Source: Epithemia pelagica
Lineage: Eukaryota; Protista; Bacillariophyta
NCBI GenBank assembly: GCA_946965045.2
Contig: OX337232.1
Span: 1,302,001-1,366,000 of the forward strand
Length of the DNA stretch: 64,000 bases
Direction: 5' to 3'
Part shown: positions 4,129-50,839 of the stretch, piece after piece
Layout of the letters: each line of letters begins with the position of its first letter
How positions within the stretch are numbered: the first letter of the stretch is position 1
The notes under the pieces: generated by a model
Told to the model about the DNA's origin: nothing
What the model saw: only the letters and a program-made list of their open reading frames with translations
Database searches by the model: none
Made by a program: the position numbers and the translations under genes

Positions 4129-4835
4129 ACGAGCCTCGTCAATATTGGGGTAGTAGAAGAAGAAGGCTGGACTTGCTGCTTCGAGTGATTGCCTTCGTTT
4201 CCTTTCCTTGATCGATGGATTTGAGTTACCTTGAAGTAATGATGGATCACTTCTCTTTGACTTCCAAACGAATCATCACAACCTGGTGAGAAGAATGACT
4301 TATTGCTTCTCGCTGTATGAACTATATCATTACTATGGCGACGTTTTGGTTCGTCACTTCCTTTGGACATATATGTTCTTTCTAGGTAGATTCAGATACC
4401 GCAGTCACAATGATTTTTGTACTCGACCACTACTCGTATTCGTAGGAAGTAGGAACACATAGCAAAGTCCAAAACTCTCTAGCGGGGTCGATTCTTCCGT
4501 TTCAGCATGAAATCTAATGCGACCGACATCCATAAACAGCAACACAAACAACAACACCAAGCAGCAACAAAGAAGGAGCGGAAGAAGCAGTTGATTGACG
4601 ACGAGCAATACACAACAAACGGTAAGTTTTCTAGCATGTTATGATATATCTGAGACGACTCCATACTTCGTCGTCGTGCAATCAAGCTGGTGTTGTCCTT
4701 CTTTCTCACGAAGGTTTATTTATGTTTTGTTTACCCCATCCAACGAATATCCATCATCTGCTGTATGCCCTCTGTTACTTGCCTTCCACCTGGGGTACAC
4801 AATCCTTTCGCGGAACATGGAAACGGTAGATAACA

Positions 4836-5018
4836 ATGGTATTTCAACGACAGGATGCATGGCGGAACCATCCAATGTACCAAAATCTTATGCGGGATCC
4901 TTTCCCAGGCTTGAAAAAGGCTGTGATAATCTACGCGATTTACTTGGGTTGTGAATATGCATACAAGTCCCTGGGACCGAAACCCAAAATATCGCACGGA
5001 GATGGACACGGGCACTAA
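4836..5018 (+). CDS. NDUFB3: Mitochondrial complex I B12 subunit (NDUFB3-like), 60 aa
   Basis: RQDAWRNHP...PFPG followed by one TM helix matches the R-x-[ED]AWR...FPG pattern of NDUFB3/B12. Confidence 0.72.
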   Translation: MVFQRQDAWRNHPMYQNLMRDPFPGLKKAVIIYAIYLGCEYAYKSLGPKPKISHGDGHGH

Positions 5019-5429
5019 ATGTAATATCGTGTCTGCCCGAGATAAAAAATAAAGAAAAGTGGAAAGGCATTCCAACCATTACAAGTGAATTAAACAAATT
5101 ATCTGCTAACAATAATAGTAGTAAGAACAATTGAACCCCCATCACTTCTACGTCTGTGAGTATTCCGATGCATGTCCATAGTCTCCGCAACACGTTCCAA
5201 CCATTTTCGAACTGTTACCGAACCTCAAGATGGAGAACATGGAACACATGCCAACTCGAATGGAAGCGTGGATCATGCGCGGCGTCGGAGAGGATTCGCC
5301 ACGAGTGATCTTTTGACAACACAACATACGATGGCTACTTCTCCAACTCTGGGGAAAAGAAATTTAGTACAGATGACACGCCACCGGGACTGCCCACATA
5401 TTGTAAGAGAGAGTGGGTCAAGATTATTT

Positions 5430-5876
5430 TCATGTTTCTTCACGGGGGAGATTATTGACATGAATAGATTTTTCAATTGATGTATCAAACTCCTGATACA
5501 CCTTGAGCGCAACCAACATGTAGTCGTAGAAGGAAGACACCACTACTCGAAGCAGTTTTGCCTCGATGGCTTGGAACGATCTTATCCAAGTCAAAGGGAA
5601 AATGATAAGACAAGAACAGAGAGGAAAGTAATGACGTCAGAAAAATGAACGGAGCATCCACACTCACATTCTCAGAATATTTTGTTCTTCCCCATGAAGG
5701 GAGAACTCCTTGAGTACCTTGTCGCTAATCTCGGTGTCAACCTGCATCACCTGCATTGTCTTCACCGCGTGTTCTGAAGTAGGGAACGCCACATCAATAT
5801 CGCAACCATAAGGAAAGTCACATGCTCGGTCATTTTCTGTGGCCACTGGTTCCTCCGTTTGAGGCATCGTCGTCAT
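5430..5876 (-). CDS. PCC1: KEOPS complex subunit Pcc1/LAGE3, 2 exons (5876-5668, 5580-5430)
   Basis: Exon 1 reads IDVAFPTSEHAVKTMQVMQVDTE. Splicing the GTGAGT...AG intron 5581-5667 gives ILRISFQAIEAKLLRVVVSSFYDYMLVALKVYQEF, the Pcc1 signature. Confidence 0.85.
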
Positions 5877-6880
5877 TGTAATATGCTCTTCATTGACTCG
5901 AGAGCGTATCGAGGTTTGTGCAGAAAATAAAATCTGCATCCGGGCCCAAAGAAGCTCCAACCACTGTACCATTCCTGGGGACTATGGGAGTTATTCGTCT
6001 GAGTTCAGTATGAACGGGACGGGTGGGCCGGAAGGCTTGGGGTCTGGGGTGGGAATTTCCAGAAAGACCAGCTGTTCCGAAAACGGACGGACACTAGAGT
6101 AAAAAGTACAATTGAGCAAACATGGCGGTTGATGAAACGGTTAAATATATACGGCAATGATATAGCAATGAATATTTTAATGGTCAGTCATGGTATGATT
6201 TGGAGGTGCACCTCCAACCGCGTAAAATGTGAGTGGGGACTTACCCTTGACGAATCTCTGCTAGTAATGTAAGACGCCCAACCGTTCTGGAATGACTGAA
6301 ACAAGACTTTTTGTTTGAAAGCTCGTAGGAACAGGTAGCAAGACATTAGAGAGAATTGCTGTGTTCGATAACGGGCATGAATCGCTACAACGGCAGAGTT
6401 AAATTCATATTATCATCATACAGCAACAAAGAATTATAAATTGACTAGGAAAGCATATATTATGAATTTTGTTTTTCTTCGTTCGTTCTGCTGACCAGGA
6501 TGCATGTGGTATTGATAATAGCATATTGGTATACGATAAAAGCAGAAGCCCTTATATCTCTCGATTGGCACTCATATTGTATTTCAGTACACATATCACA
6601 ATCGCTCAATGGAACATCGCGAAATTGCCTTTTGCGCCTGATCCTGATGGTCCGCAACGTCGACAAGATGACACTCGTAGCAGTGGCTCGTAACAGGTAG
6701 AACTGTAGCTTGACCTCTATAGATACAATCAATTAGCATCCAAATAGACAACTAGAACATTCATTAGCAACCGAATCAGATTGAGTCGCAGAACTAGTAG
6801 CTACCAATACCAGCTAACGGTGTAAACGGTCGTAGCCGGCCTTGCCGAGACGTGGCCAGAAGCGCCTTCATTTACTATGA

Positions 6881-7031
6881 CACAAATGCAATGGTGATGT
6901 GGCGACAATCAATACTCGTGTTGTTGGATCTAAACATGGACCAACAGAGAAAGACATTCCTCCAAATGTGGTTTATGCAACAAAAACTAATCTTGATCGA
7001 GCAGCAATCAATGATGCCATTTTTGCTAAAC
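6881..7031 (+). pseudogene. PIF1-family helicase remnant, 5' piece (interrupted by the 7032-13183 transposon)
   Basis: ATINTRVVG...VYATKTNLDRAAINDAIFAK is a PIF1 motif IV-like segment. An in-frame TGA at 6878-6880 precedes it, and no Walker A/B exon was found upstream. Confidence 0.75.
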
Positions 7032-7058
7032 CACGTTCGACAAGGAGCCGATTTTGTA
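7032..7058 (+). repeat. Left bipartite TIR: CACGTTCGACAAGG + 2 bp + CCGATTTTGTA
   Basis: Read directly from the sequence; reverse complement of the blocks at 13146-13156 and 13170-13183. Confidence 0.93.
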
Positions 7059-7356
7059 TTGTAATATTATGCCTACAGTATTCACTTGGTCTTGGTCTCT
7101 AGGTTGTAGGTCTTCGCCGGCCGACCCTCCACACGTGCCCATGTGTGTATCGTATCTCGTTCCATTTTTTGAAGTGCAGAACTCGTGATTTGCGCATCAA
7201 CGATGATGATACCGTGGGATGTAGTTCTCCAATCGCGAACATATTGCACAGCTTCATTCAGATGATAGTTGTCCATAATACCCTAGAAAGTGTTCGCGAT
7301 TGCACTATTTTTGCCATCTTCCGCTGGAGTAGTAGCCTCCAACAACTTGGATCGTC

Positions 7357-9816
7357 ATGGACGAAGCACTCGCAAAGTTGATCCGTGAAATTGGTTCGGC
7401 CAATAGGCCATGGTGGTATGGCATAAATGTAGGTGAAAGCGATGAGAACAGTCTTGCTAATCTACTTGGGATCTCTACGGAGTCCCTAATGTGCCTATTG
7501 AGTGTTGTCGGATGGGTGTCACGAGTGGCAACAACGAACGAATCAACATCCTCGTCGTGGAGAGTTCAAGAGAGGAAAATTGAAACCTTCCTAGACCGGT
7601 TTCACCTACGAGACATCACAGCGCTCGCGAAAAGCAGGTATGGAAATGAGCAACGGCGACATTTCCTTGAAGTGGGTTGCGACAAAACGAGTGCAAGTCC
7701 GCTTTATGTCTTCCGAAATTTCACCAAGCCATCGATTCAAAATACCAAATCCATTGCAGTACAAACAAAAAAGCTGCTTCTGAATGCAACAACAAAACAA
7801 GCTGGTGACAGTTCTACGGGGACGACTACGAATCCAACAACGCTGATAAAAACCCCATCTCCAAGGCGGCGCAGAAGTAGCATCCTGAAGAGGCCAAGAG
7901 GAGCAGCTGCTGATGACAAGAGGACGCAAAAGCGAGTTTCTCTCTCCAGTGAGACATTGGAGAATGAAAGAAAACGAGCGATGAGAATGGAGAACAATTC
8001 AAAGATCACCACTCCTGCTACCAACCAGAACAACAACAAGCAGCACGTGAGCCGGAATCAACTCATCAAGCAACAGCTGATTTGCCATTTGTTTCCGAAA
8101 GTCTTCAAGCCGGAGTTCTTCGATGTGATGGAAGAATACTTTTTGGAATCCGAATCTTTTGAGGAGCAAGATCTTGCTGGTGCCCTCGCCTCCGTCATGA
8201 AAGTACTGTATGAACACAACGAGAGAGAAAGAGGCGAAATGTTGGGGGTTCAAAGTTTTATGACCCCCAATCAAAAATTGAGCACACCTACGTTGCATGC
8301 CTATGGAATTGACACAACAAACAAACGCGTGGTTAGTGATCTTGTGCGAGACCTTGTCACTCTATCTGACAAGCGAAGAAAGCACGATGTGCTCACGACC
8401 CGGATGTCTAACGGTAGGATGGTATCTTTGGTTCGGATACCAAAATCTACCAATTTGAAAAGCTTCCATGAGCAAGACAGACACTTCAAGTGGATTGATC
8501 AAGTCTTGGAAGCACTCGGGAAACAAAACGACAGGCCGCGGAAGGTGTTGAAGCCGAGTACAGATGTGCGAAATGACGAGGTAGATGAGCTAGAGGAGGA
8601 TCAGTTAGAGGAGGGGCAAGAAGAGGAGCTGACCGACATGGAGTATACGGCAAAGAATCTCTTTGCCCATCTCGGCAAGAGATTTCCAAATGGGGTCAAG
8701 GAGGCAGTGAAACAACAAAAGTTTGCGTGCGTTGCAATGGACCCGGTTGCAACGTTTGCCATGTGGTCGGACGCAAACATAAACTACTCGCAGGCAAGAC
8801 TGATTGCACGTCACCTCAAGTACTGGTTCGGATGTCCCCTGGTTAGCTCACCTGATGAGCTAAAGAGAGTCCTAGTAACTAAGAAGGCTGTGGCACCGGA
8901 ATGCAATACGCTACAATTAAACAACGAGTCAATCGAATGGAGTGTGCGAGATGCGACACAGGTATTGCTTTACTTTTGCAATACTGTGTTTAATCGAGCT
9001 GACACTCGACAGCATTGGACCTCTATTGATATGGTTGTGTCGGCCGACCATGGGAAAGGCTTCTCTCGTGCCCATGCGGTCTTAATTTGTCGGAAACATG
9101 ACCCTAGCTCAAATAAGTGGACGGAACACAAAGACTCCTACAGTCTAGCAGATGCTAGGTGCAAGAAGGACACCTACGAGATCCTGAAAAGCACCTACAT
9201 GCCAAAACTAGACAGTGCGCTAAGTCAGTTGACAGAGAAAGGCGGTATCGACGTGTGGAAGCGAGCCCAACTAAATGAAAATGAAGAGTGGTACTACTCA
9301 AGGCTTGCGGGGTCACGTCCTGACCAACCTAGCGACACACGCTTCTATGGAGGACTCCCAGTAGAAGTGTTCTTGGCAGGAGACCTAGCCCAAATTATGA
9401 CCAACTATGGGCGAGAAGGCATGTCTAGCTGCTGGTGTGCCTTTTGTCAGCTGACAAAGGCAGAATGGCAGCCACTTAGTCATGCTCGAGGCACAAAGTG
9501 GTCGCTTGCGACAATGAAGGCCCAGCTTGAATACAACAAAACGCTCGATGAGAATGCAAAGGGTGCCCTGCGAAAGGGAATAAAAAATGTGCCTTTGCTT
9601 ACTGCCGTGGATGTGTGTCATGTGTCAATGCCTGTTCTCCACATCAAGTTGGGCGTTGTGAACAAGGCTCTAGATTGTTTGTACAGTGATCTCCAGGCTG
9701 CCTGTGAGATCTACACAGCAGCCTGGATCGATCTTGAAACGGAATGGCTCAGACAGAAAAAGGAAGAAGAACAAGTGGTGAGCGAGCTGATGGAAATCAC
9801 GCGGCAGATACAGGAA

Positions 9817-9854
<38 letters not shown>

Positions 9855-10791
9855 GGTTCCGGATGAGCACATTGCAGCTGAGATTGCTTTGTTGAAACAA
9901 AGCCTGAAGGAGAAGGATGGTGAGCGGAAGGCAAGGGTAAAGTTGGTTAAAGAAGCAAAACATGAATGGGACAAAGAGAAGAGTGTCCCTGAGAACTCAC
10001 GAAAGCATGGACAACCTGTCTATTGCAAGTTCGAAGGGATCGAGCGTGCCCATGGAATTGACAGGGCAGCGTTTCATGGGGGTGCTCTGCAAGGCAACCC
10101 CTGCAGCACAGTGTTGGTTGATCGGAAGTTTATCTTCGGAGAGATTTGGGTCTACGTCCGGGACCTCCCGGACGAACAGAAATGGGTGGATAATGCGACA
10201 ATCAAAAGGGTGATTGATGCCTATGAACGATTGATGGGGCATCTCGATGCCACTTTTTCTATTTTGCAGACGCCTCGGAATCACATCACGCCACAACAGG
10301 TGCTCCACTTAGAGCATCATTTGAAGCATGCTTCTTGGGTATGGCGAGCACTCGACATCCCAATTTCACCCAAGATGCACATTTTGGAAGACCATGCACT
10401 TGACGCAGTGAAACGGTACGGCGGAATCGGTGATTTGGGTGAAGATGAAGGCGAGCGCGCCCATCAGACTGGGGCGCAGATGGAAAGCCGCATGAAGTCT
10501 CTAAACCACTCAACAAAGGGGCAAGTTGTAGCTCAGTTGGAGGTGATGACAAAGAATGACGCAGTGCAAGACAGGCTTGTTGCGGTCACGAAAGCGGTAC
10601 AACGGAACGTGAACAGGAGAAATGGTGAGGGGGGTGATCAAGAAGCCCCCAAATCCTACAAAGGCAACAAGCACAAGGCCTTGCGTGACTCTGAGCGGGT
10701 GGCACTTCTATCGATGTTCGCTATCCAAGAGGAGAAGTACCCCCGACTTGATGAACTACGACACCAAAAGCTGCTTCAGTCGGAATCATGA
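7357..10791 (+). CDS. DDE transposase of the RAG1/Transib/Chapaev-like group, 1144 aa, intact ORF
   Basis: Motifs in RAG1-core order: SADHGKG (D1, 9046), AGDLA (D2, 9382), CWCAFC (Zn), PVLHIKLG, PKMHILEDH (Zn His pair) and GIGDLGEDEGERAHQ (catalytic E, 10453). Confidence 0.85.
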
Positions 10792-10841
10792 TAGCTACCA
10801 TAATCGCATGTAAGGAATACTAAGTAAGTTTTGGTTAATGA

Positions 10842-11267
10842 CTAAGCTTTCTCTAGTACAAGTCCCCGCTTCGGGAAACCACTGTCACGGCACGCTATTT
10901 TTAGGAGCTTGAAAGACTCATGGTGCCCCATGATGGTGAAGCGAAGCATCCACTCCCGACACTCTTCTCCAACGTGACATCGGTCTCCTTCATGTCCCAA
11001 AGGCAATGGAACGACTGCAAAGAACTCGAGTCCCTCGTGTCCATTGCGTTGACTCCTGACACGAAAGACATCCCAAGCCAACACTTCATGGGACAGAAAT
11101 GTCTTATGGACCAGCGTTTTGTCGGCGCCGGTGTAAGACACTTGAAAGCCATGCCCAAAGTTTGTCTTGCCGACAAAGAGAGCGGCACTGTGGCTCCGAG
11201 TCCACATGTGATCCTCTGAATCACGGTCTACTATTCCGACCTCAAACATTCCACCAGTCAATCTCAT
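10842..11267 (-). CDS. Transposon accessory ORF2 (141 aa from ATG 11267), unknown function, convergent with the transposase
   Basis: Complex, beta-strand-like composition (MFEVGIVDRD...FQVSYTG...VLAWDVFRV). Its stop lies 50 bp from the transposase stop. The 5' end may extend into the CAA-rich tract. Confidence 0.55.
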   Translation of the reverse strand: MRLTGGMFEVGIVDRDSEDHMWTRSHSAALFVGKTNFGHGFQVSYTGADKTLVHKTFLSHEVLAWDVFRVRSQRNGHEGLEFFAVVPLPLGHEGDRCHVGEECREWMLRFTIMGHHESFKLLKIACRDSGFPKRGLVLEKA

Positions 11268-11389
11268 TGTTGTTGCGTCGTTTTTGCCGCCACCAGCAGT
11301 CCTGTTCTTTTCCGTTGCTTCTGCCACGGGGGCGTGTGTTGTCGTGGCTTGTGTCGTTGTCGTTCTTCTTCTTGTTGTTTGAGGTCAGC

Positions 11390-11860
11390 GTGGTTGCTTG
11401 CGTTGTCGTTGTTGATGTTGTTGTTGTCGTCGCGGCTTGTGTTGCTACTGTTGTTGTTGCCACGGCTTGTCTTGACGTTGTTGCTGTTGTCTTCGTCGCG
11501 GGTTGTGTTGTCGTCGTCGTTGTTGTCGTCGCTTGTTGTCGCGGGTTGTGTTGTTGGTGTTGGTGTTGTTGTTTCCTGTCAGCGTCGTGGATTGTGTTGT
11601 TGTTGTCGTTTGTTGATGTCGCAGTGGTGTGTTGTTGTTGCCACGGCTTGTCTTGACGTTGTTGCTGTTGTCTTCGTCGCGGGTTGTGTTGTCGTCGTCG
11701 TTGTTGTCGTCGCTTGTTGTCGCGGGTTGTGTTGTTGGTGTTGTTGTTGTTGTTGTTTCCTGTCAGCGTCGTGGATTGTGTTGTTGATGTCGCCGTGGTG
11801 TGTTTTGTTGTTGTTGTTGTTTGTTGATGTCGCCGTGGCGTGTTTTGTTGTTGTTGTTGT
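11390..11860. repeat. (GTT/GTC)n-rich low-complexity tract containing a 181-bp tandem duplication and a 40-bp duplication
   Basis: CACGGCTTGTCTTGACG... starts at both 11461 and 11642. GATGTCGCCGTGG occurs at both 11786 and 11826. Confidence 0.85.
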
Positions 11861-12206
11861 TTGCTGTCAGCTCCGTGGTCCGTGGATTGGGTTGTTGTCG
11901 TCGTCGTCAAAGTTTGTTTGTTGTGTTAGTTCCGTCGCCGTCCTCGTCCTTGGCTGCTGGCGCGGACGATGGAGTGGCCTCCTGCGCTGTTTGATTGTTG
12001 CATCTTGCATCACCATGTGCTTCGCTCTCTCATCATTCCCGATTGTGGAATGATTGTTGATATTCAAAAAGTGGGAACGTCGTTCCCACAGGTCAAGCAC
12101 GTGTGCAGTCTTGTTGCGGACAAGGCGGGAAGCGCACGCAAGCTCTTCTACACATGGTGGAGAAGCACTTCGTTTGATTGTTGCATCTCTTCACTTTTTG
12201 GAAACC

Positions 12207-12871
12207 ATGCAAGCAGATGAGCAGAAGCAACCGGATGGATATTGCCTCACGGCAATCCTGAAGGACCAAGCTTCAGGCACCACTGCTGTCCTCAATGGTG
12301 TTGCCACTGATGGCATTGTCGTGTCGTCATCGTCGTCTTCGTTGCCTTTTTCGTTTTCTGTGGACAACTTCACAGGTGAGAAACACGTTGTACACTTGTC
12401 TCTGCTGTTTCACGTACTTACCTTTTTGTTGTATCGGTTCCAGGAACCATTTGCATCGACGGTGACTGCTGGAAGCTTGTTTACCTCGACCAGCGTCACC
12501 GTTCGATGCAATCCAAAGACCCGTTGAGCGTCATTGCCTTCAAGATGAAGGATGCTGAACGCACGGACCACGGGGTTGGTACCATTCACGAAGGAGAAGG
12601 AGAAGAAGAAGCCTCAACTGACGAGTCGTCGGACGATGGTGTTGTGTACACCAAGGACTCATTTTCTCAGGATGTCACCATGATGCAAGACGAGCGCCTT
12701 CTCAAGGCTTTCGACTTGATGAGCCCTGATTCACGACATGAACGTGAAGAGGATGATGAGTTACAGAAGAAGAAGAAGAAATGGAACAACAACAACAACA
12801 GCAATGATAGCGATGACTCACCTTTGTTTGCTCGTCGGTCGACGCGACGCAACAACAAAAAGAAGAACTAA
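12207..12871 (+). CDS. Transposon accessory ORF3, 2 exons (12207-12375, 12444-12871), 198 aa, unknown function
   Basis: A canonical 68-bp intron (GTGAGA...CTTAC...pyrimidine tract...CCAG) joins two ORFs in frame: DNFTG|TICIDGDCWKLVYLDQRHRSMQSKDP. The protein ends in an acidic then K/R-rich (NLS-like) tail. Confidence 0.65.
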
Positions 12872-13047
12872 TCACAGGTGGTGGGGCAGCCGTTGATGAT
12901 TCTTGTTTGATTGTTGAATAATGAACCAACCCGCCAGGAATAAGTAGTAGTAGTAGTGAGCAGTGCACGTTGTTGACATGTCTGTTGTTGTGCTCGTTCA
13001 TATCCGTAGTAGTTTATCACCCGCTTTGCTTTTGCATCTGTTGTTGT

Positions 13048-13113
13048 TGCACGCTGGAGGCATGTTCTAATAGGTTATGATGCACCTTGGAGGTACGTTC
13101 TAATAGGTTATGA
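13048..13113. repeat. Subterminal 33-bp tandem repeat x2 (29/33 identical)
   Basis: TGCACGCTGGAGGCATGTTCTAATAGGTTATGA followed by TGCACCTTGGAGGTACGTTCTAATAGGTTATGA. Confidence 0.9.
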
Positions 13114-13145
13114 GACTTCAAGAGAAGTGGAAAATAGTACTAAAG

Positions 13146-13183
13146 TACAAAATCGGGGTTTACTGTACCCCTTGTCGAACGTG
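13146..13183 (-). repeat. Right bipartite TIR: CACGTTCGACAAGG + 13 bp + CCGATTTTGTA (read on minus strand)
   Basis: Reverse complement reads CACGTTCGACAAGG-GGTACAGTAAACC-CCGATTTTGTA. Confidence 0.93.
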
Positions 13184-13186
13184 AAC

Positions 13187-13983
13187 ATCTGGAAAATACC
13201 CATTCAAAAGATCCTAATGTTGACCCTCCCATGCACACAATCTGTATCAAAGCGTCCAACTTGAAGTGGAAAAAAGCGGGAACAAGAAATGACTATGTTG
13301 ATTTCAACAAGGCAAGTGAAGATATCCTATATGCCACCTGTGGTGAGGGTCACTTGCAAGGACGAGACAACAAGAGATATGATCCACTTTTGAAACTGTA
13401 TTATAGAAGACCGTTGTGTATCAATGAAAACAAAGACGTTGAGTCATGTATTGCTAATGGAGCCATGTGTGAATTCAATGGCGTTCTCCTTAAGCAAGGG
13501 GTGACATTAACTGATTTGGAGAAAATATTGATTGATGGATATTATGTTTGGAGTCTTAAGGTCACTCAAATCGAGGGAATCAAGGTGAAAATGGTTGATG
13601 GAAACCAGAACCATGTTGTTCTTTTGAAGCCTCAGACTGTTACTCAACAAGTGCAGTTCCCACTCCCCATGTTTGGCATGAAACGAGTGAGGAAAACGAT
13701 GAAAATGACGCAGCTTCCTCTCAATGTGTCCAATGCAAGGACTGTTCATAAGCTACAAGGGAGATCAATCGAATTTCTTTACATATCGAACTGGGACTAC
13801 ACGGGCAATTGGAACTATGTTTGTTTGTCGACAGTTTGCCAGCTCAAAGGCCTTTTCCTTGCAAAACCACTTATAGCCGACAAATGTCGTGGAATGTCTG
13901 CTGAATGTAAAGAGTTTCATGTACATTTCCGGACAACTAAACGTCCGCCACCCGCGGTTCAGCTCGATGAAAGACTTAATTAA
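13187..13983 (+). pseudogene. PIF1-family (Helitron-type) helicase remnant, 3' piece
   Basis: Contains LKLYYRRPLCINENKDVESCIANG, QLPLNVSNARTVHKLQGRS (motif V) and WNYVCLSTV (motif VI, with the usual Arg of SRV replaced by Thr). Confidence 0.8.
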
Positions 13984-16522: not shown

Positions 16523-18421
16523 CTACTCCTTTTGCTCCCATGCCATCCCATTTTGCTCTGGCTGTGGTTGCTGGTGCGGCTGTGCCCCGAAATAGTTTTC
16601 TGCTGATACTTTGCTGCTCTCTTTTGATATCAGGGACACGTCTTCGTCGTCCGACTCTATTGAGAGTGGACTTCTTGATCGAAGACTTCGTTCCCATGAT
16701 GGCATGGAGGCCAACACTCGAGGTCCCTGATTAGCTTCTTGCATCATTGAAGTAGGAGCGTCAGGCATAGCTTCGTTTTCAAAAACCTTTGTTAAAGACG
16801 CTCCGCCAATCGATCCGGTTGCAGAGTGATCCCCCATCATCATACCAGATTGATTCTCGAGAACACTTCCAGCCCCTTCCATTTCCATACTTCCTTCCTC
16901 ACCACGGCCACTAAAGTAAGACGCCGCAGTGCTGAACTGTTCCGAAACCGGCAGCCAACTGTGACAGCTACCAAGCGATGAGAATGCAACAGACGAGAAT
17001 CCCACAGACGATTGTTGGTCTGGTACGGCCAGTCTTGGTGGCGGTGGCATACGTTCTTCGGACGCAACGCTTCCTTCATTGTCGTTGGCCGAACGATCCA
17101 CAAGCTGTACCTCTTGTCCTTCCCATTCAACCGCCATCTCATCTTCCGGTTCTTCCACTTGTTGATTGTGAACCTCAGGTGGTTGAGGGGCCACGGGTGG
17201 AAAGGCTGGTGCTGGTTTCTGTGCAGTGTCATTACCGCATAATATACTTCCCGCATCCCAGGATCCGATCGATCCAAGGATCTGGGTAGCCACTTGGTCC
17301 ATGAGAGTACTATTTTGTTCCTCATCAAGGCCTTGGGGTTCAATATCATGTGGTTGTGCGTGGTTGTCCACAAGCGAATTGCCACTCATGACAGAATTGC
17401 TTGACGATGGCGCAACTCGTTTCACACTTCGCTTGGTATCACTTCGGAACTTGACCATTCGCCGTTTCTTGCTGTCATCATTGTGTACATACGACAATGG
17501 TTTGCTCGAGATTGATCCCAGGGATCCACCACTTGTGACATGGGCATCGTGAGCGTCTCCAGAATTGGAATGATGGCTTCCAAGAGAGCCATTACCCGAG
17601 GTTTGTCCTCCACTAAGACTAAGGCTTTCCTCTGTCCATCTCTTGAGGCTCTCTGCGCTCGAGCTTATATAATCAGCAGTCTGCTCAAACGCTGACTTGG
17701 GCGGCGGAGGAGGATGCGGGTGGTGAGGATGCCCATGCGGCGGAGGAGGGTAATAACCCCAGTGTCCTTCGGGTGGTGGTGGTGGATAGTAGCCTGGGTG
17801 ACCTGGATGTGCATGATGGGGATGAGGAGGAGGTGGGTGAGGGGCGTGATGAGAATATCCGTAGTATGAAGGGTAAGACGGTCCCCATCCTCCCTGATAA
17901 TAGGTCGGAGATGATTGTGGTGGTGGTGGCATTTGACTTGGAGCATTAACGTGTGTTTCGTGTTCTTCCTTCTTGAGCTCTGCTCGTTGCTCGTTGATTT
18001 CCGTTTCGATTTCGGCACGAATCGTGGGAGCATTCTCACGCAGTGCTTGACTCGTCTTATCTCTAGCTTTTTCATCCCCAATGTCCCTCCAAAGACCTGT
18101 CTTCTTATCTTGCTGAAGAAACCGTCCCGGTGGATCAAGACCACGAATTTCGGAAACAATACTACTTGCTATAAGGCGCTTTTCACGCTTGAACCGCGCC
18201 GTGAGATAAACACGTTTCCGCTTCTCTACAAGCGTTCGAAAGCGCTCGTTTCCAGGGTGTGAATTAATACTCCCTCCACGCCCACACAAAACATCGTTCG
18301 GACTTGGGTCCTTTGTTGTTTCGTTCTTAAAGTCTGGTGTCGACCCAGAATCAGGTGATATTTGTGCTGTGGTATCCATATCCTCCGAAGTCGGTGTTGT
18401 CATATCTCTGTCTTCACTCAT
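16523..18421 (-). CDS. DUF6824-domain protein (diatom-expanded putative regulator), 632 aa
   Basis: NDVLCGRGGSINSHPGNERFR...GRFL...WRDIGDEKARDKTSQALRE is the DUF6824 signature, followed by a P/H/Y-rich low-complexity region. Confidence 0.85.
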   Translation of the reverse strand: MSEDRDMTTPTSEDMDTTAQISPDSGSTPDFKNETTKDPSPNDVLCGRGGSINSHPGNERFRTLVEKRKRVYLTARFKREKRLIASSIVSEIRGLDPPGRFLQQDKKTGLWRDIGDEKARDKTSQALRENAPTIRAEIETEINEQRAELKKEEHETHVNAPSQMPPPPQSSPTYYQGGWGPSYPSYYGYSHHAPHPPPPHPHHAHPGHPGYYPPPPPEGHWGYYPPPPHGHPHHPHPPPPPKSAFEQTADYISSSAESLKRWTEESLSLSGGQTSGNGSLGSHHSNSGDAHDAHVTSGGSLGSISSKPLSYVHNDDSKKRRMVKFRSDTKRSVKRVAPSSSNSVMSGNSLVDNHAQPHDIEPQGLDEEQNSTLMDQVATQILGSIGSWDAGSILCGNDTAQKPAPAFPPVAPQPPEVHNQQVEEPEDEMAVEWEGQEVQLVDRSANDNEGSVASEERMPPPPRLAVPDQQSSVGFSSVAFSSLGSCHSWLPVSEQFSTAASYFSGRGEEGSMEMEGAGSVLENQSGMMMGDHSATGSIGGASLTKVFENEAMPDAPTSMMQEANQGPRVLASMPSWERSLRSRSPLSIESDDEDVSLISKESSKVSAENYFGAQPHQQPQPEQNGMAWEQKE

Positions 18422-20620
18422 GGTCGGTGCTGCGAGAGAGTGCCGCTTTGCGAATTGGGGCGTGACTGTTGGCTACTGCGAATGATTATCAAGGAATAAA
18501 CAGCACAAAATGTATTTTGGACTTGCGAATGCCAACAACAAGGCTTCGATCCTTGGGCGTCTTTGGTTCCTATTGTCCCCTTTCCAAAGATGAAACGTTG
18601 AGCCAATCGTGTCCTTATTCTTGATCAGTGCACCTTTCTATATCGCCGATTCGTCCTTGATTAGTCTCTCTCGGGAGGAGTACTTTTTTCGTGGCCTCCT
18701 CCTCTTGTTTTCTCCGTTCGATGATGGTACATCAACAATGTACGTACACAACAAAAGGAGAGCAGCGAGGAAAGCGGTCATGAAAAAAGGATACACACGG
18801 AGCGTTGGGCCACCCCACTGTTCTCTGCTTCTCCGCGGTCTCGTGGGAGAGCCATAGATAAAATTTCATATATCATACGTAACGTTATATATTGATAATC
18901 GCTCATTTAACGTATCATCGAGTCGTTCCAGCGCACCCTGGATGCAAACAGATACCCCCTTACAAATGTTTAGAAGGTAGCACGTGAACGTGACCTAAGT
19001 AAGTTTTATCTTTTTAATTGCCCTTTCTTGGGGGCAGTGACAGATGGCCGACAAAAACATGAAAGTTAGATCTACCAGCCAATTTTTCAATCTAATCGAA
19101 TGCCAACGCAGACGATCCACCTCGGGAATGAGTCGCTACACTGTACTCGTACGGTGTTTAGGGCGAGAGGGAACAATGGATGAGACTTTTTCTCTCACAA
19201 AATCTCACTCAACGGAAATGAAAATTTGGTTTTTGGTTTCCCGGCTGGTGTGGTTCCTAAAAAATGGCCATTCGACAATCAATGTAGTGTATGTTGTATT
19301 CTATTGCCATTCCCGCCATCTGTCAGGTAGTAGTGTTTTGTTCCTAGGTAGTCTCGAGATCTTGGAACGGAAAGACCGGCCCGCTTGTTGTCTGTGCTCG
19401 ACAGCGCCAACGAAAGAAACATGAGGAACAACGACCGATCGTGCTCTGTTCAACTCCTACGATCCCCTTTCAACGACAAAGAGAAGGACGTTGAACCACT
19501 ATCCACATGCTAGTTGTCATTTTCCTTGGTTTTTCCTCCCCGCTTGTCTACGACCAATTCGCGTTGGTCTTGGTTCAACATCGAAAATCGATCCAAACTG
19601 CACAACCATTTGAGTCGTTCATCTTCCGATCTGAGTCGTATGGAATGGATACATTACCGGGAAGAAAGATGGGATCAAAGATGAGATACCTTGATTGATT
19701 GATTGAGCTTTCCCTGCTTTGTCCCGGAAAGCAACGACGTGGCCTTTAGGATGTCCCGGACCATCAACCACAAGGGATATCCTTCGAATATTGTCGAGCA
19801 TACCGTATACATCCCCGTATGTGCCAAGTATTGTTCGCAGCAACAGCAGAAGAGCATTGGTGTTTCATACGTAGCGCTGTCACGTTTCATTGGAAAATTC
19901 ATGTTTTGTCGAGCAGGAAAGTCGGAAGTCGGAATGGGCCGACGTCTTCCCACCGCTGGCCAAACGTTGATGGGCATGTCGAATTACGGCCGTCAGATGG
20001 TCAAGATAGACGGGAGGCAACATTTAGGATAACTTCTACTACTAGGTTTTTTCATGAGAAGATCATGACCATTGGTGGGGGAGCACTGCGCCGTTTGCAA
20101 AATCTTGAACCCCACACACCGCGATTCTTATACCATGGAAAGATTCTGTTAGTATCAACACCTCGCTGTAGCAAGAGATGTCGTTGATCGAATCGTCACT
20201 GGATTGGTCGTCTTGAATGATGTGAGAATAGGGATATGGGTTATGGGAATGAGCCGTTTTGTCCCGCGCCAAAATGGAATGTCGGCAGGTGCGTGGGGGA
20301 GATTCCTGCGCCGAAGCACATGCGCAGGTGACGGGTTCGCCTAAGTATTCAAAATACATAGAAGCGCATATTGGACCTGGACGCGCCCGTCAGACGGCGC
20401 GATCATTCTTTCATCTTTTGAAGTTTGACGCCAAGAACGACGAGAAACAGAGAACATCATTGCCGCCATGGTCGAAGGGTAAACATTCAATTCACAGGTA
20501 TTAGTTGACTTCGACTCTTGTGGGATCCTGACGCATCACAAAGTCGCAACAAGACAATTCATTCGCGTGGAGCGCAACCAGTCGCAACAAATCAGCAACC
20601 ACAGTTTCTGTCGTGGGGGC

Positions 20621-23600
20621 ATGCCGAAACGAAAACAACCGAGTTCTGCTTCCGACACAGAGGATGACAATGATGGACGCGCATCTCCCTTTCTTCCGAA
20701 ATGTGACAATGTACAAGTAAATCACACTGCAGCACCAAGGAATCAAGAGAATGTTCCTCCGCGAATTCCTCCCCCACAAAACGGGAATACATTCTCCTCG
20801 TCTCCGACACCATTGCTCGACCGTCGATACCCTGAAAGATCCGATGGGGTCTTAGCCAAGAGCGCAACTGACGAAAAGAGTAGCGGCAGGTCCACGGGGG
20901 AATTTGGGGGTACATCTAGAATACCCGGAATTCCCAAAGAAAAAACGAGCTCTATTTCGTTCCAAACAGCTGGAACTGGAAGGTCTCTGCAGGTGTCGAA
21001 TGAACAACTCCTTCGAGCTGAAGCGCTAGTTTCACGTCCATCATCTGAAAAATCGCGTGGTCACGACGAACAAGTTTCGGACGACAGTAATGTCGTGCCC
21101 CTCCATTTCGATAGTGCACAACCCTCCACAGACTCGACCAATCCCCCAGCTACAGGACTGTTTCAGAGCGCCGGTTGTGGCAAGGCGATTCATGTCAAGG
21201 AAGAAGACCTCACCAGAGCGAACGACCTTCTTAATCGACCTGCCAAAAATACAGGGAACCATTCCGAGTTCACTGGCTTTAGAGAAATTCACCCGGGAGG
21301 GATTGGAAAAGGGGGCCGAAAAGGACGTGATGCGGCTAATCAAACTGCCGGCAACACAAGGCCTCTTCCAGCAAGAGTTTCATTCGGTGGCCTCGACTGT
21401 CACAGTTCGTCCAGTAGTAGAGAAAGAGACAGCATTCAAAACACATCGCTCAGTCACAGTGCGTCCTTTCACAGTGCAGGAAGTGGCAAGACGATTCAAG
21501 TGGATCCGGAAGCCCTTCTCAGGGCAAATGATATGCTCAATCGATTAGACAATGACAGTTCACGTCAAACAAGAGGTGGCCAACTTCATAAGGACCACGA
21601 TACCAATGTGAAACACATTCCACGCGATCGCAGTCGGACGAAAGATAGCCAATTGTTTCAGAGTGCCGGGAGCGGGAAGACTATACAAGTCGATGACGAA
21701 CAACTTTCAAGGGCAAATGAGCTTCTGAACGTACCTGTTCCTGCCACAACCACAATGCGTCGACCGCCGAGAGTCTCGTTGCCAAGTGTGGGTGACTTCA
21801 GAACCAAGGATGGTAATGAGAAATGCGAAAAGAAAGGTGCGCCTATGGCATTGTTTCAAAGTGCAGGAAGTGGCAAAACGCTTCATGTGGATGAGGAAGA
21901 GATGGAGAGAGCAAGCGAGCTTCTGAACAAACCTGTAAAAACCTCTCGCCATTGTCCTTCAACGATGCCATTGCAGAACGGAGGGACTGGTAAAGAACAT
22001 GGTGAAGGCGAGGGACACGGAACTTCGGGGACAAAATCTGGATTATTTGCTAGTGTGTTTCAAACCGCCGCAAGCGGTAAGACTATTGAGATCGATGAAG
22101 ACCAGCTTGCAAGGGCCGATGAGCTTCTAAACGAACCTGTCACAAATACTGCGAGTCGGCCACCAAGGGTCTCGTTGCTAGGTACGGGCGACTTGAAAAC
22201 CAATAGTAAGAATGGAAAATTTGTGAATGAAGGTGCACCCATGGCATCATTTCAAAGCGCGGGAAGTGGCAAAACGCTTCATGTGGATGAGGAAGCTATG
22301 ACGCGAGCAAACGAGCTACTTAACAAACCTGTGAAAAGGTCACGAGATTGTCCACCAGAGACGCCGTTGCAAGACGGAGGGAATGACAAAGGACTTGACA
22401 AAGGCCCGCGACAAGCAACTACTGGAACGAATGTAGCTGTTTCGTTTCAGAGTGCGGGGAGCGGTAAGACCATACACGTCGATGAAGAACAACTCTCAAG
22501 GGCAAATGAGATTCTGAACGTTCCTGTCACAAACACTTCGAGTCGGCCACCAAGGGTCTCGTTGCCAGGTGTGGGTGACATCAGAACCAAGGCCGGTATT
22601 GAGAAATGCGGAAGGAAAGGTGCACCCATGGCATCATTTCAAAGCGCGGGAAGTGGCAAAACGCTTCATGTGGATGAGGAAGCTATGACGCGAGCAAGCG
22701 AGCTACTTAACAAACCTATGAAAAGGTCACGAGATTGTCCACCAAAGACGCCGTTGCAAGACGGAGGGAATGACAAAGGACTTGACAAAGGCCCGCGACA
22801 AGCAACTACTAGGATAAATCCTGGTGTTTCGTTTCAGAGTGCCGGGAGCGGTAAGACCATAAACGTCGATGAAGAACAACTCTCAAGGGCAAATGAGCTT
22901 TTGAACGTTCCTGTCACAACCACTTCGAGTCGGCCACTAAGGGTCTCGTTGCCAGGTGTGGGTGACTTCAGAACCAAGGCCAGCTTTGAGAAATGCGGAA
23001 GGAAAGGTGCACCCATGGCATTGTTTCAAAATGCGGGAAGTGGCAAAACGCTTCATGTGGATGAGGAAGAGATGGCGAGAGCAAGCGAGCTTCTGAACAA
23101 ACCTGTAAAAACCTCTCGCCATTGTCCTCCAAGGATGCCGTTACAAGATGGAGGGAATGGGCGTGACGAAGGCGCGAAACAAGAAACTGCTGGGACGAAT
23201 GCAGCTGTTTCGTTTCAGAGTGCGGGGAGCGGTAAGACCATAGACGTCGATGAAGAACAACTCTCAAGGGCAAATGAGCTTTTGAACGTTCCTGTCACAA
23301 ACACTTCGAGTCGGCCACCAAGGGTCTCGTTGCCAGGTGTGGGTGACATCAGAACCAAGGCCAGTTTTGAGAAATGCGGAGGGAAAGGTGCACCCATGGC
23401 ATTGTTTCAAAATGCGGGAAGTGGCAAAACGCTTCATGTGGATGAGGAAGAGATGGCGAGAGCAAGCGAGCTTCTGAACAAACCTGTAAAAACCTCTCGC
23501 CATTGTCCTCCAAGGATGCCGTTACAAGATGGAGGGAATGGGCGGGGCAAAGGCCCGCAACAGGGAACTGCTGGGACGAATGCTGGTGTTTCGTTTCAGA

Positions 23601-26600
23601 GTACGGGGAGCGGTAAGACCATAGACGTCGATGAAGAACAACTTTCAAGGGCAAAGGAGCTTCTCAATGAACCTGCTCCTTCCACAAACACTTCGAGTCG
23701 GCCACCAAGGGTTTCATTACCAGGTTTGGGTGACTTCAGAACCAAGGACCAGATTGAAAAACACGAAAACACAGGTGTGCCTGTGGCATCATTTCAAGGT
23801 GGTGGAAGTGGCAAATCACGTAATGTGGATGAGGAAGATACTCGAACAAGTGAGCTTCTCGATGGAACGTCACAGAATCCGGCATATTGTCCACCTAGAG
23901 TATCGATGCATGAGTCAAGTTTTGAGTATAAAGCCCAAGAAAGCAGTAAGAAGAATCAGTCGGATGGAGAGTGCAAGGACATTTCATTTTCCAGTTTTCA
24001 ACTCCCCAGCTCCGAATCAATTGATCTCGGCCAATTGGACATTGATGCCTCCCCTGCACATGAGAGCAGCGTAAAGGAGGGCAAGAAGGATCTCGTCACT
24101 CAAGAAGTGATCCTATCATTCGTTTACTCGCAAGTCCATGATTATGATTGTTCTTTTACAACGTCGCGCGGAGAAAATGAGGGGACAAATGATTCGAAAA
24201 GCGAGCGTCCATCAGATCGAAACGTCACCCCATCGTCTTTACGTGGCTCCTCACTTATCGATATCACTAGTCCTCCTTCTTCACATGGACCAGGCACGGA
24301 GAGTATTCCAGCTTCATTGGCATCTCCAGGAAGACAGGCGAGATCGAAAGCAGCTAATTCTGGAGTTATGTCGGATATTCAATTTCAATCTCACGATGAG
24401 ATGTCGAATCCTTACAAAACACCGTATGCTACAAAACATATCTCGCTGACGGATTCGCGGGGGGCTGCATTTTCCTCCTTGAGAGCAAACACTGGACACT
24501 TACTGGAAGCTGCAATAAGAAGAGGCGCGATGTCAGGTTTAGACGAATGCAGAATTTATGGTGTAAACCCATTAGTCTGCGGAACGAACAGTGCAAACTC
24601 CGAATCAATTCGATTCGACAGAGAAACGAGGGCTCCTTGCGACCGTAACTCGGCTCGTAGTGAAGGCCTTATAGGTTGCGCGGCAGATCTTGAGCTTGCC
24701 CTAAAATCTGCAGGATGCAACACTGACAAAATCTCATCCGTTTGGATTCGCAACCATTCTCGTTGGATAAATTGGAAACTGTGCTCAATTGAACGACGCT
24801 TTCCTCGCTTTTTGGCTAATCGTTTCTTCACGTATGATCGCGTTGTCGCCCACTTGTGCTCTCGTTATCGGAAAGAAATTGAGGATGGGAAACGTTCGGC
24901 ACTCCGCCAGATTCTCAACCACGATGCCTCTGCGAAACGAATGATGACTCTGTGTATTGCGCAAGTACTCCGTAAAGAAGCAGAATCAGCGATTTCTTTT
25001 TCGCTCGAATTGACTGATGGATGGTACTCTGTTTATGCTGAGCCCGACCGATTTCTCACGAAAAAGATTGAGGATGGGACACTTTGTGAGGGTACCAAAG
25101 TTGTATTGTCTCAAGCTGAGCTGTGTGGTGGGGATGAAGGTGTTGATCCCTTAGATGAAGGCTTCAAACCGTCCGAAGCTCCGTATCTACGGATATTTGC
25201 AAACGGAACAAGAATTGCCAAGTGGGGAATGAAGCTTGGCTTTGTCCCTCAACAAACCAAGAGCATGGATTCCCCGTCCTTGACAGTCAAAAGTATGCGT
25301 GGGATTGTGCCTGGTGGCGGGATTGTTCCACGGATTGATGTCACCGTATTGAAAAGGCACCCTATCCAATATCTCACCCAAGGCGACGATGAACCAAGAC
25401 GGACAATATCTGAGAATGAGGAAATGGAGCGTCGTACAAAATTTGAAAACAAACAAGCACGTTTTGTTGAAAAAATGGTTTCGGAGATAGAGGCTCAATG
25501 CTCAAAGGTGCGTTCGCATCTGTCAATTATTGGAAGTTAGACTTGATCTAACTATTCTCTGTTCTCGTCAGGATCTTGAAGAAGAAGCACCTGCAATCTG
25601 GCGTCAGCGTGCTGCGGGAAATGATGACTTCGACGCATCTGCCTTATCATATAGTGAACAAAAACAACTTGAGGTTTGGAACCGGAAACGCCTTGAACTT
25701 CTGCGGGTCAACGTGGAGCAAGAAATGAAAGGCAGACTGGAAGAACATGACATTGTTTTTGTGCAGTCCAAGCCCTTTCATAGATTTGTTGTTTGTACTT
25801 CAGACTATTTCGAGGAGAACGATGGTAAAACCTCATCAACCGCTGACCTTACGCTATGGGAGCCAACAGAAGAACAGCTTGAATTACTTAAAGAGGGAAC
25901 TTGTGTGCGGATGAGCAATGTGTCAGTGAAAGATGAGACTTTCGAATGCCGTTTGCAGTTAGTAGCAAACTCGAGGACTAGATTCCGCTCGGCTGAAGCA
26001 GATATCGCTGATCACATCAACAAAATAACATCGAAAAGACTTGGGCTGGTACAGGTCCACGCTCTATCGAAAAGAAAATCGATGCTTGTTTTCAATCTGG
26101 CTGCGATAGTAATGGAGGTTGTGGTGACAAGTATGGGGATGCAATACATTGCAACTGATAGATCCGGGCTGGTTGTGCGCATCGAATGCTTCGAAGCTGG
26201 GACTGCATCATCGATAGACCTTCCTGAACGTTTTCCAGTGCTTGTATTCCAAGGACTTCGCTTGGTTGATTACGACTCGTATTCAAACTGTGCTGTTGCT
26301 GAGATGGGCAGTGAGTCAACAGTCAATATGAATACTACAGACCCTAGTGTTTGTTCACTGCAACGTTGGGTCGGCACAGAGGACGGTCAGACTCGTTTGT
26401 GTAAACTCGCTCCTTATATCAAGGCCAGGCTTTCACCAGTCCCTGTCGCCAAGAATTCGAGAAGTCTCGTTCAAGCCCTAGGATATTTGACCGACTTTAT
26501 GGTTTTGCATGGTGGCGAACTCGTTGTCAAAGTTGACTGTTTTGCGACGGGTATTCAGAGCTGGTCATTACCACTTTCTCTTTTATCCCGAATCAAGTAC

Positions 26601-47397: not shown

Positions 47398-49344
47398 TCA
47401 TCCCATACGAGTCGTATTTGGCTTCGTTGCCACAAACTCTGATGATGACGCTCCCGGCAAGGACGCTGGATCCGGACCGCTTGTACCAGCAATTCCGTGA
47501 TCAATGTTTCTCCAAGCCAGTGGGAACTCACGAGCGAAATGAGATCCACTAATGGGCCAATATTCTCGCATTCGGTACTTCTTCTCGGCCAGGGCGTAAT
47601 AATAAGAGTTAACAATACCATGTGCAAACCCTGGTCGTTTGTGCAAATCACTGTCGTATCCCCGTAATCGATTGATATAACCGGTAAATGTACTGAACCA
47701 GCATCCAAAAAACGTACGTGATCTTGACGCCACCAATTGATCCAGCATACCATAAAAATTGGGACTCAGACCTTTTATTTCTTCGGTAAAGTCACTCAAG
47801 TACAACATATCGTAATGCTCAGCCAATGGAGCAAAGAACGCTTTGTCACGAACCTCATCAGTCGCCATATAGACCGTGGTTCCCTCTGGTATTTCCTCTT
47901 TGGCAATCTCGTACATTTCCTGAGCCGATACACGCGTTTTCTTGTACTGAAAATCACCTCGTCGCACATGAAAGGCATCAAATGGGGTATTCTCCGGTGT
48001 TACTGGTTCTTCACTCGTTGTTGGTGTCTTGGAAGATGAACCCTGCCTTTGACGAACATGCTTTCGAATGGCTTGAACAATGCGCGCAGCTGCACACTGT
48101 ATTTCATTCTTATATCGTACATGATCTCGTACAAATCGCTTCATCCACAAATCTGTCTTCCAGTCTTCAAAGAACAAAAAGGTGTAGAAATGAGTGAGCA
48201 GGCGTCCTCCAGAGAAGCCTTTTTTACCTGCAAAATGCAAGACTTCTTGTTCTTGCAGTTTGGTATCGTACAAACACAACTGTGATCCTCGTTGTGCATT
48301 TTGCTGTTCCTTCCATCGTTCCTTGGTGGAAGCATGGACGGATGTCGGATTTCCAATGTAGTCTTCAAAGGGTGGAAAACCTCCATCGGTCACCGATATT
48401 TCTTGAAACAAATTTGTGAGAGTTGTATCGTTTTTTGGCTGTGCGGGGAAGGCGGCCATACACTTCATGGTATCCCAGCTTTCGGGTGTACCGCCAATCT
48501 CGCGCAAATATGGCTCCAATAAGTTTTCATTGTCCCCTCGCCCATCCCATTTCGAAATATTTCCTGGTGGAAACAAGACTTTTCCAGTAGTCGTCGATTT
48601 CAAATGACCTTTCAAGGCTCGTTGGAGAAGGAACTCCTCCATGGTTATGATTTGCAGACCGTGAACATGACGTGCCATTTCATGGATTGGAAAGAAATCT
48701 TGAAACCCAAACGGACGGTATCTTCCGCGATTACCAGACTTGGGGTCTGTTTCGGCCTTGTCTAGCAAATACATTGGTTGATCAGGAGGTAGAACCAGAA
48801 TCCGACCCATGGCAATTGCTAGAGCCATGACTGTTTCCATAGCCATCCGAATGTTGTTGAATCCTCCATGATCTGGCTCAAACGTGATGAATTTGGGATT
48901 ATCAGGATCGTAAAAAGGAGATATGTAAGCTTCATCTTCAGCGATATCTTGCCAATAAACCATTTCTTGCGTCTCTTCGACACGCATGGGGCCTCCAAAA
49001 TCTTTACACTGCAAATGTCCAAAATGTTTCCCTGTCGCAGAGTTTTTCCATGCCGGATTCTCAATACCAGCACCACCAAACAACGCCTGATCCAGACTGT
49101 CAAGCTCTTTGGGAGGAGGAGGTATCTCTGACATGGCGTTGAGTGATTCTTGAGGAAGATTATTGCCTGGACTGTCATGTTTGTATTGCGTCAAGAGGAA
49201 TGATCCATGGAAAAACGATGCTACCAAGGTGGCAATACAGCAACATCCCAGGAAAAATGCCACTGTTGAAAAACGGAGAGAATGGCCACGCTGTCGCCTC
49301 GGGCTGCCGCTAGAGGTTACCAATGGTCTCTTATTGACGACCAT
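47398..49344 (-). CDS. GDP-fucose O-fucosyltransferase family protein (GT-B, POFUT-like), type II membrane; paralog A
   Basis: FEPDHGGFNNIRMAMET, HVRRGDF, YMATDE and DQLVASRSRTFFGCWFSTFTGYINRLRG, with an N-terminal TM. Alternative start at 49404. Confidence 0.88.
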   Translation of the reverse strand: MVVNKRPLVTSSGSPRRQRGHSLRFSTVAFFLGCCCIATLVASFFHGSFLLTQYKHDSPGNNLPQESLNAMSEIPPPPKELDSLDQALFGGAGIENPAWKNSATGKHFGHLQCKDFGGPMRVEETQEMVYWQDIAEDEAYISPFYDPDNPKFITFEPDHGGFNNIRMAMETVMALAIAMGRILVLPPDQPMYLLDKAETDPKSGNRGRYRPFGFQDFFPIHEMARHVHGLQIITMEEFLLQRALKGHLKSTTTGKVLFPPGNISKWDGRGDNENLLEPYLREIGGTPESWDTMKCMAAFPAQPKNDTTLTNLFQEISVTDGGFPPFEDYIGNPTSVHASTKERWKEQQNAQRGSQLCLYDTKLQEQEVLHFAGKKGFSGGRLLTHFYTFLFFEDWKTDLWMKRFVRDHVRYKNEIQCAAARIVQAIRKHVRQRQGSSSKTPTTSEEPVTPENTPFDAFHVRRGDFQYKKTRVSAQEMYEIAKEEIPEGTTVYMATDEVRDKAFFAPLAEHYDMLYLSDFTEEIKGLSPNFYGMLDQLVASRSRTFFGCWFSTFTGYINRLRGYDSDLHKRPGFAHGIVNSYYYALAEKKYRMREYWPISGSHFAREFPLAWRNIDHGIAGTSGPDPASLPGASSSEFVATKPNTTRMG

Positions 49345-49811
49345 CGCGTTAACACGAAAATTTCTGGTTATCCTTGAAAGCCCACAGTCATTTTGACGCG
49401 CCATAATTTTTGGCAAGCGGAAAAAGTGAGGGACATCACAAGAAAGCGCGACTTATAAGCGATCTTCTATACTTATCCTAAAAATGGTCACGATCGGCAG
49501 AAAACATCGGGAATTGGGATTTGGGATACATCAATAGATGCCACTCTTTGGGAGTATCCTAATCCTAAAAAGAAGAATATCCATGTAACTCATGTGACCA
49601 TTGAAGGAGGAGACCTAGGAGAACTCCAGCTTTAAGCGAACGTCGCTCAAATATAATCTGTATGTGTCTTGCAAAGCTTTCCCGGAGTTTCCCTTTCGTA
49701 TTTCTCGCCAAAAATGAGAAGACTCGTCCAAGCCTTACCATCAGCTCTGGCTGAGAAACACCGAGTCGAAAGCAGTACGTTTCTGCCACTGTCTGGATTC
49801 GCGCCGAGACA

Positions 49812-50648: not shown

Positions 50649-50839
50649 ATGACCGAAGGCTCATCGGTTGGTCGTTGCCGCGATTGCTGATGACCCAGCA
50701 ACCCGAGAAAAATGATCACGACTTGGGGGTCGTCAGTCGCAAAGATGATCCCATTTTAAAAGGGGTGAAAGTGGGGTCTACCCCCTTTAACGAGATGGAT
50801 CATTTTTCACATCGCATCATTGGAGATTGGAGATCAACG

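Follow-up and report, generated by a model that had tools for sequence, protein, structure and literature searches.

A probable Chapaev-like transposon with a RAG1-type core fold and bipartite, non-equivalent ends from a probable marine diatom

RAG1-like motifs and similarity to RAG1 are general to the whole CACTA/EnSpm-Mirage-Chapaev-Transib (CMCT) clade of DNA transposons (PMC12730594), the lineages of which mostly have CA..TG tips and target site duplications (TSDs) of 2-5 bp; ESTA transposases, for instance, have been matched to RAG1 by HHpred. Chapaev elements are distinguished by a TSD of 3-4 bp, invariable 5'-CAC..GTG-3' tips and the C(2)C, LH and H(4)H motifs of the transposase, with a TWA TSD serving as the criterion for Chapaev3 (PMC4079192). 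A Chapa zinc-finger N-terminal domain, with or without a RING, has been described for Chapaev, which Kapitonov and Koonin include in the Transib superfamily as a distant clade (PMC4411706), and the Chapaev transposase corresponds to DUF1280, which clusters with RAG1 (PMC3985635). In ProtoRAG, the TR1 and TR5 elements of the ends are 27 or 31 bp apart, and the asymmetric pair is preferred (PMC8289069). Here, we describe a transposon carried by a 64-kb stretch of contig OX337232.1 (the window, to which all coordinates refer unless stated otherwise) and consider it likely that this is a Chapaev-like, RAG1-fold transposon of the CMCT clade, with bipartite and non-equivalent ends, from a probable marine diatom. 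No paper on Chapaev-like, RAG1-fold elements in diatoms was found in the literature.

The transposon is 6,152 bp long, complete and of the cut-and-paste type (Table 1). Contigs from public reads (runs X1, X3, X4 and X5) were aligned to the left part of the element; X1 and X3 may represent the source sample of the window assembly, X4 and X5 are independent, and the runs containing the element appear to be DNA data. In an empty-site contig (runs X1 and X3), position 7031 continues directly into ATCTGGAAAATACCC..., which is the sequence found after the right AAC, and only a single AAC is present, which proves both boundaries of the element and the 3-bp TSD. In a marine-metagenome contig (X4), positions 7032-7162 are matched without difference and preceded by another flank, with the junction at the start of the terminal block (block A, see below). 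The transposase falls into a cluster of 11 members at 97% identity, all from one assembly. Seven loci of this cluster were retrieved and six full copies were compared (the window copy, L001, L002, L003, L005 and L006), which are 5.8-6.15 kb long, 99.3-99.5% identical and related in a star-like pattern. Perfect 3-bp TSDs flank five of the six (AAC, AGA, TAC, CGT and GGT); together with the AAC on both sides of the window copy and the empty site, they bear out the TSD length given in an earlier note, which had been made from the sequence alone. The element is a young, recently mobile autonomous DNA transposon, intact and evidently active. Sequences of the family also occur in marine, biofilm and sediment metagenomes, one of the grounds on which the host is taken to be a probable diatom.

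Two of the loci depart from this pattern. The triplets that flank L002 differ (ACC at 5673-5675 versus ATA at 11471-11473 of that locus), which recombination between two copies or mutation may explain. Another locus, L004, has a split transposase and lacks the right end; it has its left flank and upstream genes in common with L001, as would result from a segmental duplication or from two haplotigs of one insertion.

The transposase open reading frame (ORF) is intact, and its 1144-aa product matches no Pfam family and no PDB sequence. An exhaustive search recovered 971 representative homologs. Across 31 full-length homologs, D564, D676, C694, C697, L761 and H762 are invariant, whereas H1008, H1013, E1029 and E1033 are nearly so; the motifs that the earlier note had listed in order for an intact enzyme of this length (D..D, CxxC, LH, HxxxxH and ExxxE) are thus conserved in the homologs. 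The AlphaFold (AF2) model of aa 420-1144, built from 75 sequences, has a predicted local distance difference test (pLDDT) score of 93.6 and a predicted template modelling (pTM) score of 0.90. When this core model was compared with the PDB by Foldseek, the best 49 matches were all RAG1, amphioxus RAG1L (BbRAG1L) or HzTransib, with E-values down to 8.6e-13, and a second structural aligner yielded Z-scores of 22.9 for mouse RAG1 (residues 459-1008), 20.6 for HzTransib and 20.4 for BbRAG1L. The uniform identity of the PDB matches and the high Z-scores support a RAG1/Transib-type fold of the modelled core, with the match extending from the dimerisation and DNA-binding domain to the C-terminal domain; structure prediction, a check proposed in the earlier note, thus came out on the side of the RAG1/Transib fold. 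RAG1 fragments also ranked first in a language-model search. Identity to RAG1 in the structural alignments is 10-12%, and the family profile searched against PDB sequences returned coiled-coil noise only and no RAG1 chain. The core is preceded by an N-terminal module of ~120 aa (aa 262-385), which is conserved among relatives and followed by an acidic linker. Two helices immediately preceding the dimerisation domain can be aligned, loosely, with the last part of the nonamer-binding domain of RAG1 (two entries, high root-mean-square deviation), which is not evidence for a nonamer-binding domain.

Within the CMCT clade, we place the element in a large, unnamed Chapaev-like branch, outside the Transib/RAG line, because of its 3-bp TSD, the CAC..GTG tips, the occurrence of DUF1280 in homologs and the lack of RAG1 Pfam matches. 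All of the Chapaev hallmarks listed above, namely, the TSD length, the tips and the three transposase motifs, are found in the element. The Pfam family DUF1280 is matched by 4 of the 31 homologs (P0076 with 28.5 bits, compared to the curated cut-off of 25), and the nearest Atlas cluster by shape carries DUF1280. In the AFDB, also searched by shape, a PHD-type zinc-finger protein, named like the DUF1280 cluster, is found at an E-value of 8e-19, ahead of RAG1 at 1.8e-12. By contrast, the RAG1 Pfam domain models have no match at E <= 0.1 in the window protein and the 30-31 homologs scanned, and neither Transposase_21 (PF02992, CACTA) nor DUF1258 (Mirage) was matched by the window protein or the scanned homologs.

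Several observations weigh against this reading of the element. Given that the window protein is without any Pfam match, the link to Chapaev is transitive, via homologs and shape. Cys and His residues are, by our reading, too few in aa 1-420 for a Chapa zinc finger, and no Pfam zinc-finger family matches; the model of the N-terminal module is unusable (pLDDT of 54.7), and the TSDs of the copies are not the TWA of Chapaev3. The product of the second ORF (ORF2, see below) has no Pfam match, a best Atlas score of 0.84 (weak) and no recognisable fold or family, and could not be aligned convincingly with the partner ORFs of the relatives. The designation of the element as RAG1/Transib-like in the earlier note therefore stands for the fold and the order of the motifs but not for membership in Transib/RAG, which finds no support given the 3-bp TSD, the absence of RAG1 Pfam matches and the nearest named relatives being DUF1280 proteins; with Chapaev included in the Transib superfamily as a distant clade, the designation is right only in the wide sense. 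With this element, a large Chapaev-like branch of RAG1-fold transposons is documented in diatoms and marine metagenomes, even if the asymmetry of the element's ends has no role in pairing.

Both ends of the element carry the same two perfect blocks, a 14-bp terminal block A, with CAC..GTG tips, and an 11-bp subterminal block B, and exact occurrences of both blocks in the window are limited to these ends. By our estimate, the chance expectation for an 11-mer common to two 50-bp stretches is ~6e-4. The two blocks are separated by 2 bp on the left and by 13 bp on the right, as the earlier note had described for the window, and this architecture, with perfect blocks at both ends, recurs in 6/6 full copies. 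With CACGTTC taken as a 'heptamer' and ATTTTGTA as the distal block, the spacing amounts to 12 bp on the left and 23 bp on the right. The register is arbitrary, because conservation extends over 14 and 11 bp in the two blocks, and the 11-bp difference alone is register-independent, a distinction that the earlier note had drawn correctly. It had also proposed aligning the ends across copies: the blocks and the 11-bp offset are indeed found in all six, but copies that are 99.4% identical say nothing, through the end architecture that they share, about its conservation (at this divergence, the 80 terminal bases should contain ~1.3 variable sites, and none was seen). Beyond block B, the similarity of the two ends is not significant (local alignment versus shuffles, p = 0.35); a third block suggested by global alignment is therefore not real, and a long imperfect terminal inverted repeat (TIR) with several indels was rejected for the same reason.

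The element is cut at its CAC..GTG tips and inserts with a 3-bp staggered cut. The 14-bp tip block would presumably be held by the catalytic core, and the 11-bp inner block would presumably form a second protein-binding site, contacted either by the N-terminal module of the transposase (aa 262-385) or, by analogy with TNPA in En/Spm, by the product of ORF2. The distance of block B from the tip block, 2 bp on the left and 13 bp on the right, makes the two ends structurally non-equivalent. Transposons with structurally non-equivalent ends commonly require one end of each kind, and functional asymmetry of the ends is plausible.

How far this asymmetry resembles the 12/23 rule is a separate matter. 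An independently evolved rule of this kind, whereby a transposase dimer would bind the tip and inner blocks and the one-turn difference would make only left/right synapsis productive, is in our view rather unlikely. The 11-bp offset is close to one helical turn and does not rotate block B to another face of the helix, but we estimate that an offset drawn at random would lie no more than 1 bp from a helical turn in about one case in four, and the 12/23 register was chosen. Each of the six full copies has one left and one right end with both blocks perfect at both ends; these copies are, however, near-identical and provide no comparative signal, and the candidate ends of a more distant relative (L014, see below) are without the 11-bp offset. 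The RAG1 fold and the conserved N-terminal module on an acidic linker, reminiscent of the position of the nonamer-binding domain before the core of RAG1, are in favour of such a rule, although no fold like that of the nonamer-binding domain emerged from the structural comparison. Similarly, the reverse complement of block B agrees with the nonamer of recombination signal sequences (RSSs) at 7/9 positions, but its orientation is opposite to that in an RSS, and CACGTTC agrees with the heptamer CACAGTG/CACAATG at only 4/7 positions (CAC and one more base). The preference of ProtoRAG for its asymmetric 27/31 ends offers a precedent (PMC8289069). If true, this reading would mean that, in a unicellular alga, a RAG1-fold enzyme outside the Transib/RAG line has convergently acquired a spacer-length-coded counterpart of the 12/23 rule.

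The same arrangement could have no role in pairing at all, which we hold to be possible but doubtful. Block B would then act as a promoter or regulatory motif common to both inward-facing genes or as a binding site tolerant of any spacing, and the 11 additional bp at the right end would be a neutral indel that became fixed in a single recent master. Consistent with this, each end lies upstream of an inward-reading ORF, all copies derive from one recent master, nothing further is conserved between the ends and a single spacing state per end was observed. Yet block B is identical at both ends, inverted, less than 40 bp from the tips and ~300 bp from the ATG, a position more in keeping with a transposition site than with a promoter, and transposons with bipartite ends are usually spacing-dependent (PMC8289069 for ProtoRAG). 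Retention of a 12/23 arrangement from a common ancestor with Transib/RAG, with ends homologous to RSSs, is highly improbable: although the fold, the CAC start and an A/T-rich distal block are common to both, in most Transib families, the TIRs are symmetric and contain no nonamer (PMC8289069), the TSDs are of another length than here, the orientation of block B is the reverse of that of the nonamer, and the transposase is only 10-12% identical to RAG1 and nearer to Chapaev. Asymmetric bipartite ends as such are already known, for example, from ProtoRAG. The origin of the 12/23 rule from transposon ends is an open question, and the element offers a simple natural substrate with which to ask whether this enzyme architecture reads spacer length.

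Among more distant relatives, L014, the transposase of which is 29% identical, has candidate ends in the form of a 14-bp TIR with copies 5.9 kb apart and no TSD. Instead of the 11-bp offset, weak second motifs at these candidate ends are offset by ~29-31 bp. A 12-mer, TTAGTACTATTT, is located 41-46 bp inside the right end of both the element (window 13132-13145) and L014 (6613-6630), with ~2.5e-4 such matches expected by chance; it is kept as a lead only, because the L014 termini are without a TSD. The motifs TACAGTA and AGTACT, also common to the ends and L014, were discarded, with 7-mers being at chance expectation. All relatives other than L014 lack one end. A metagenome scan for relatives provided three loci, none of which (0/3) had both ends; a protein scan of viral contigs produced no match, a scan of genome contigs for further relatives was blank, and a word-based protein search with the family profile added nothing new. 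Matches to the 14-mer of block A in viral contigs were attributed to chance, block B being absent from them. In L013, an apparent 'CACACGT-23-ATTTTGT' arrangement was rejected, given that ~0.2 such matches are expected by chance and that no matching left end is present. Just beyond the partner ORF of the related transposon, the same locus contains a separate 2.85-kb unit (4222-7076) with perfect 33-bp TIRs and a 708-aa ORF, which is probably another DNA transposon.

The read contigs also reveal a sister subfamily in which the first 12 bases are replaced by CACGTTCGCTTC, followed by the same left-end sequence, with no indel reported; linked substitutions at 7242-7307 accompany this tip. In X1, the depth over the first 400 bp is ~2x that of the element body, suggesting that relatives or non-autonomous derivatives have the left end in common. 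One read contig departs from the element at 7347, immediately ahead of the ATG. The left end is probably also present in non-autonomous or chimeric derivatives.

Five relatives, with transposases 25-36% identical to that of the element, encode a convergent ORF of 148-174 aa at the position of ORF2, and four of these ORFs resemble one another. Upstream of ORF2, which is read from the minus strand, the T/G-rich region is minisatellite-like, with a 125-bp repeat that is 99% identical and recurs 181 bp apart; its translation would give a T/N/Q-rich peptide.

Table 1. Features of the transposon and their positions in the window.
Feature	Position	Strand	Basis or details
Complete autonomous transposon	7032-13183	+	Empty-site contig joining 7031 to 13187 onward; six full copies 99.3-99.5% identical
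Left TSD copy (AAC)	7029-7031		Window sequence and empty site
Left terminal block A (CACGTTCGACAAGG), perfect 14-bp TIR	7032-7045	+	Window, all copies, X4 junction
Left spacer, 2 bp (AG)	7046-7047	+	Identical in all copies
Left subterminal block B (CCGATTTTGTA), 11-mer	7048-7058	+	Window, copies
Transposase ORF, 1144 aa	7357-10791	+	RAG1-fold DDE core (modelled), ~aa 458-1080; D564, D676, E1033 (or E1029); C694/C697; L761-H762; H1008/H1013
Convergent ORF2, 161 aa	10842-11327	-	After the transposase in every copy
T/G-rich low-complexity repeat region, length variable among copies	11330-11950		181-bp duplication; contig joints skipping 180-362 bp; L002 and L003 ~360 bp shorter
Right subterminal block B (CCGATTTTGTA on minus strand)	13146-13156	-	Window, copies
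Right spacer, 13 bp (GGTACAGTAAACC read inward)	13157-13169	-	Identical in all copies
Right terminal block A (CACGTTCGACAAGG on minus strand)	13170-13183	-	Window, all copies
Right TSD copy (AAC)	13184-13186		Window sequence and empty site

The element is inserted in another repeat (6400-7031 and 13187-13983), the left part of which is broken by stop codons and which shows multi-copy depth in X1. Read through the empty site, its frame codes for a helicase-like protein with ...TVHKLQGRS... at the end, which we take to resemble a PIF1/Helitron helicase, with no support from Pfam. Elsewhere in the window are a DUF6824 protein (16523-18421), a BRCA2 homolog (20567-25540) and three neighbouring ORFs of 672-784 aa (47398-55726), each with a GDP-fucose protein O-fucosyltransferase domain. 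Two 1088-aa ORFs, also elsewhere in the window, that were considered as duplicates of each other proved on comparison not to be duplicates.

Compared with known systems, the element resembles En/Spm, the CACTA transposon of maize, in the 3-bp TSD, the CAC-type tips, the coding capacity for two proteins and the unlike layout of the subterminal motifs at the two ends. Of the two En/Spm proteins, TNPA binds to the subterminal motifs, and TNPD has its site of action at the TIR. The element differs in lacking a Transposase_21 match, in having one inner block per end rather than arrays of 12-bp motifs and in that its ORF2 has no detectable similarity to anything. The piggyBac transposon (3 versus 31 bp) and the P element (21 versus 9 bp) likewise have two blocks per end with unequal spacers, and both ends are required; their transposases, however, belong to unrelated superfamilies and their offsets do not correspond to one helical turn. 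With Chapaev, the element has in common the TSD length, the CAC..GTG tips and the motifs, and both its homologs and the nearest shapes, a DUF1280 cluster and a similarly named protein, point to the same family. Chapaev, however, has been described from animals, whereas the element comes from a probable diatom, lacks a Chapa zinc finger or RING in the N-terminus and encodes a convergent second ORF; from Chapaev3, it is set apart by TSDs other than TWA. The element differs from Transib and RAG1-RAG2 in having a TSD of 3 bp as opposed to 5 bp, a transposase with low identity (10-12%), no RAG1 Pfam match and no RAG2-like partner, as well as a heptamer similar at 4/7 positions, a distal block inverted relative to the nonamer and conserved-block gaps of 2 and 13 bp. 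Nevertheless, it shares with them the predicted core fold (Z-scores of 20-23), the DDE triad and C2-H2 zinc site with similar spacing, the CAC at the cleavage site and, as in the 12/23 RSSs and the 27/31 ends of ProtoRAG, bipartite asymmetric ends (PMC8289069).

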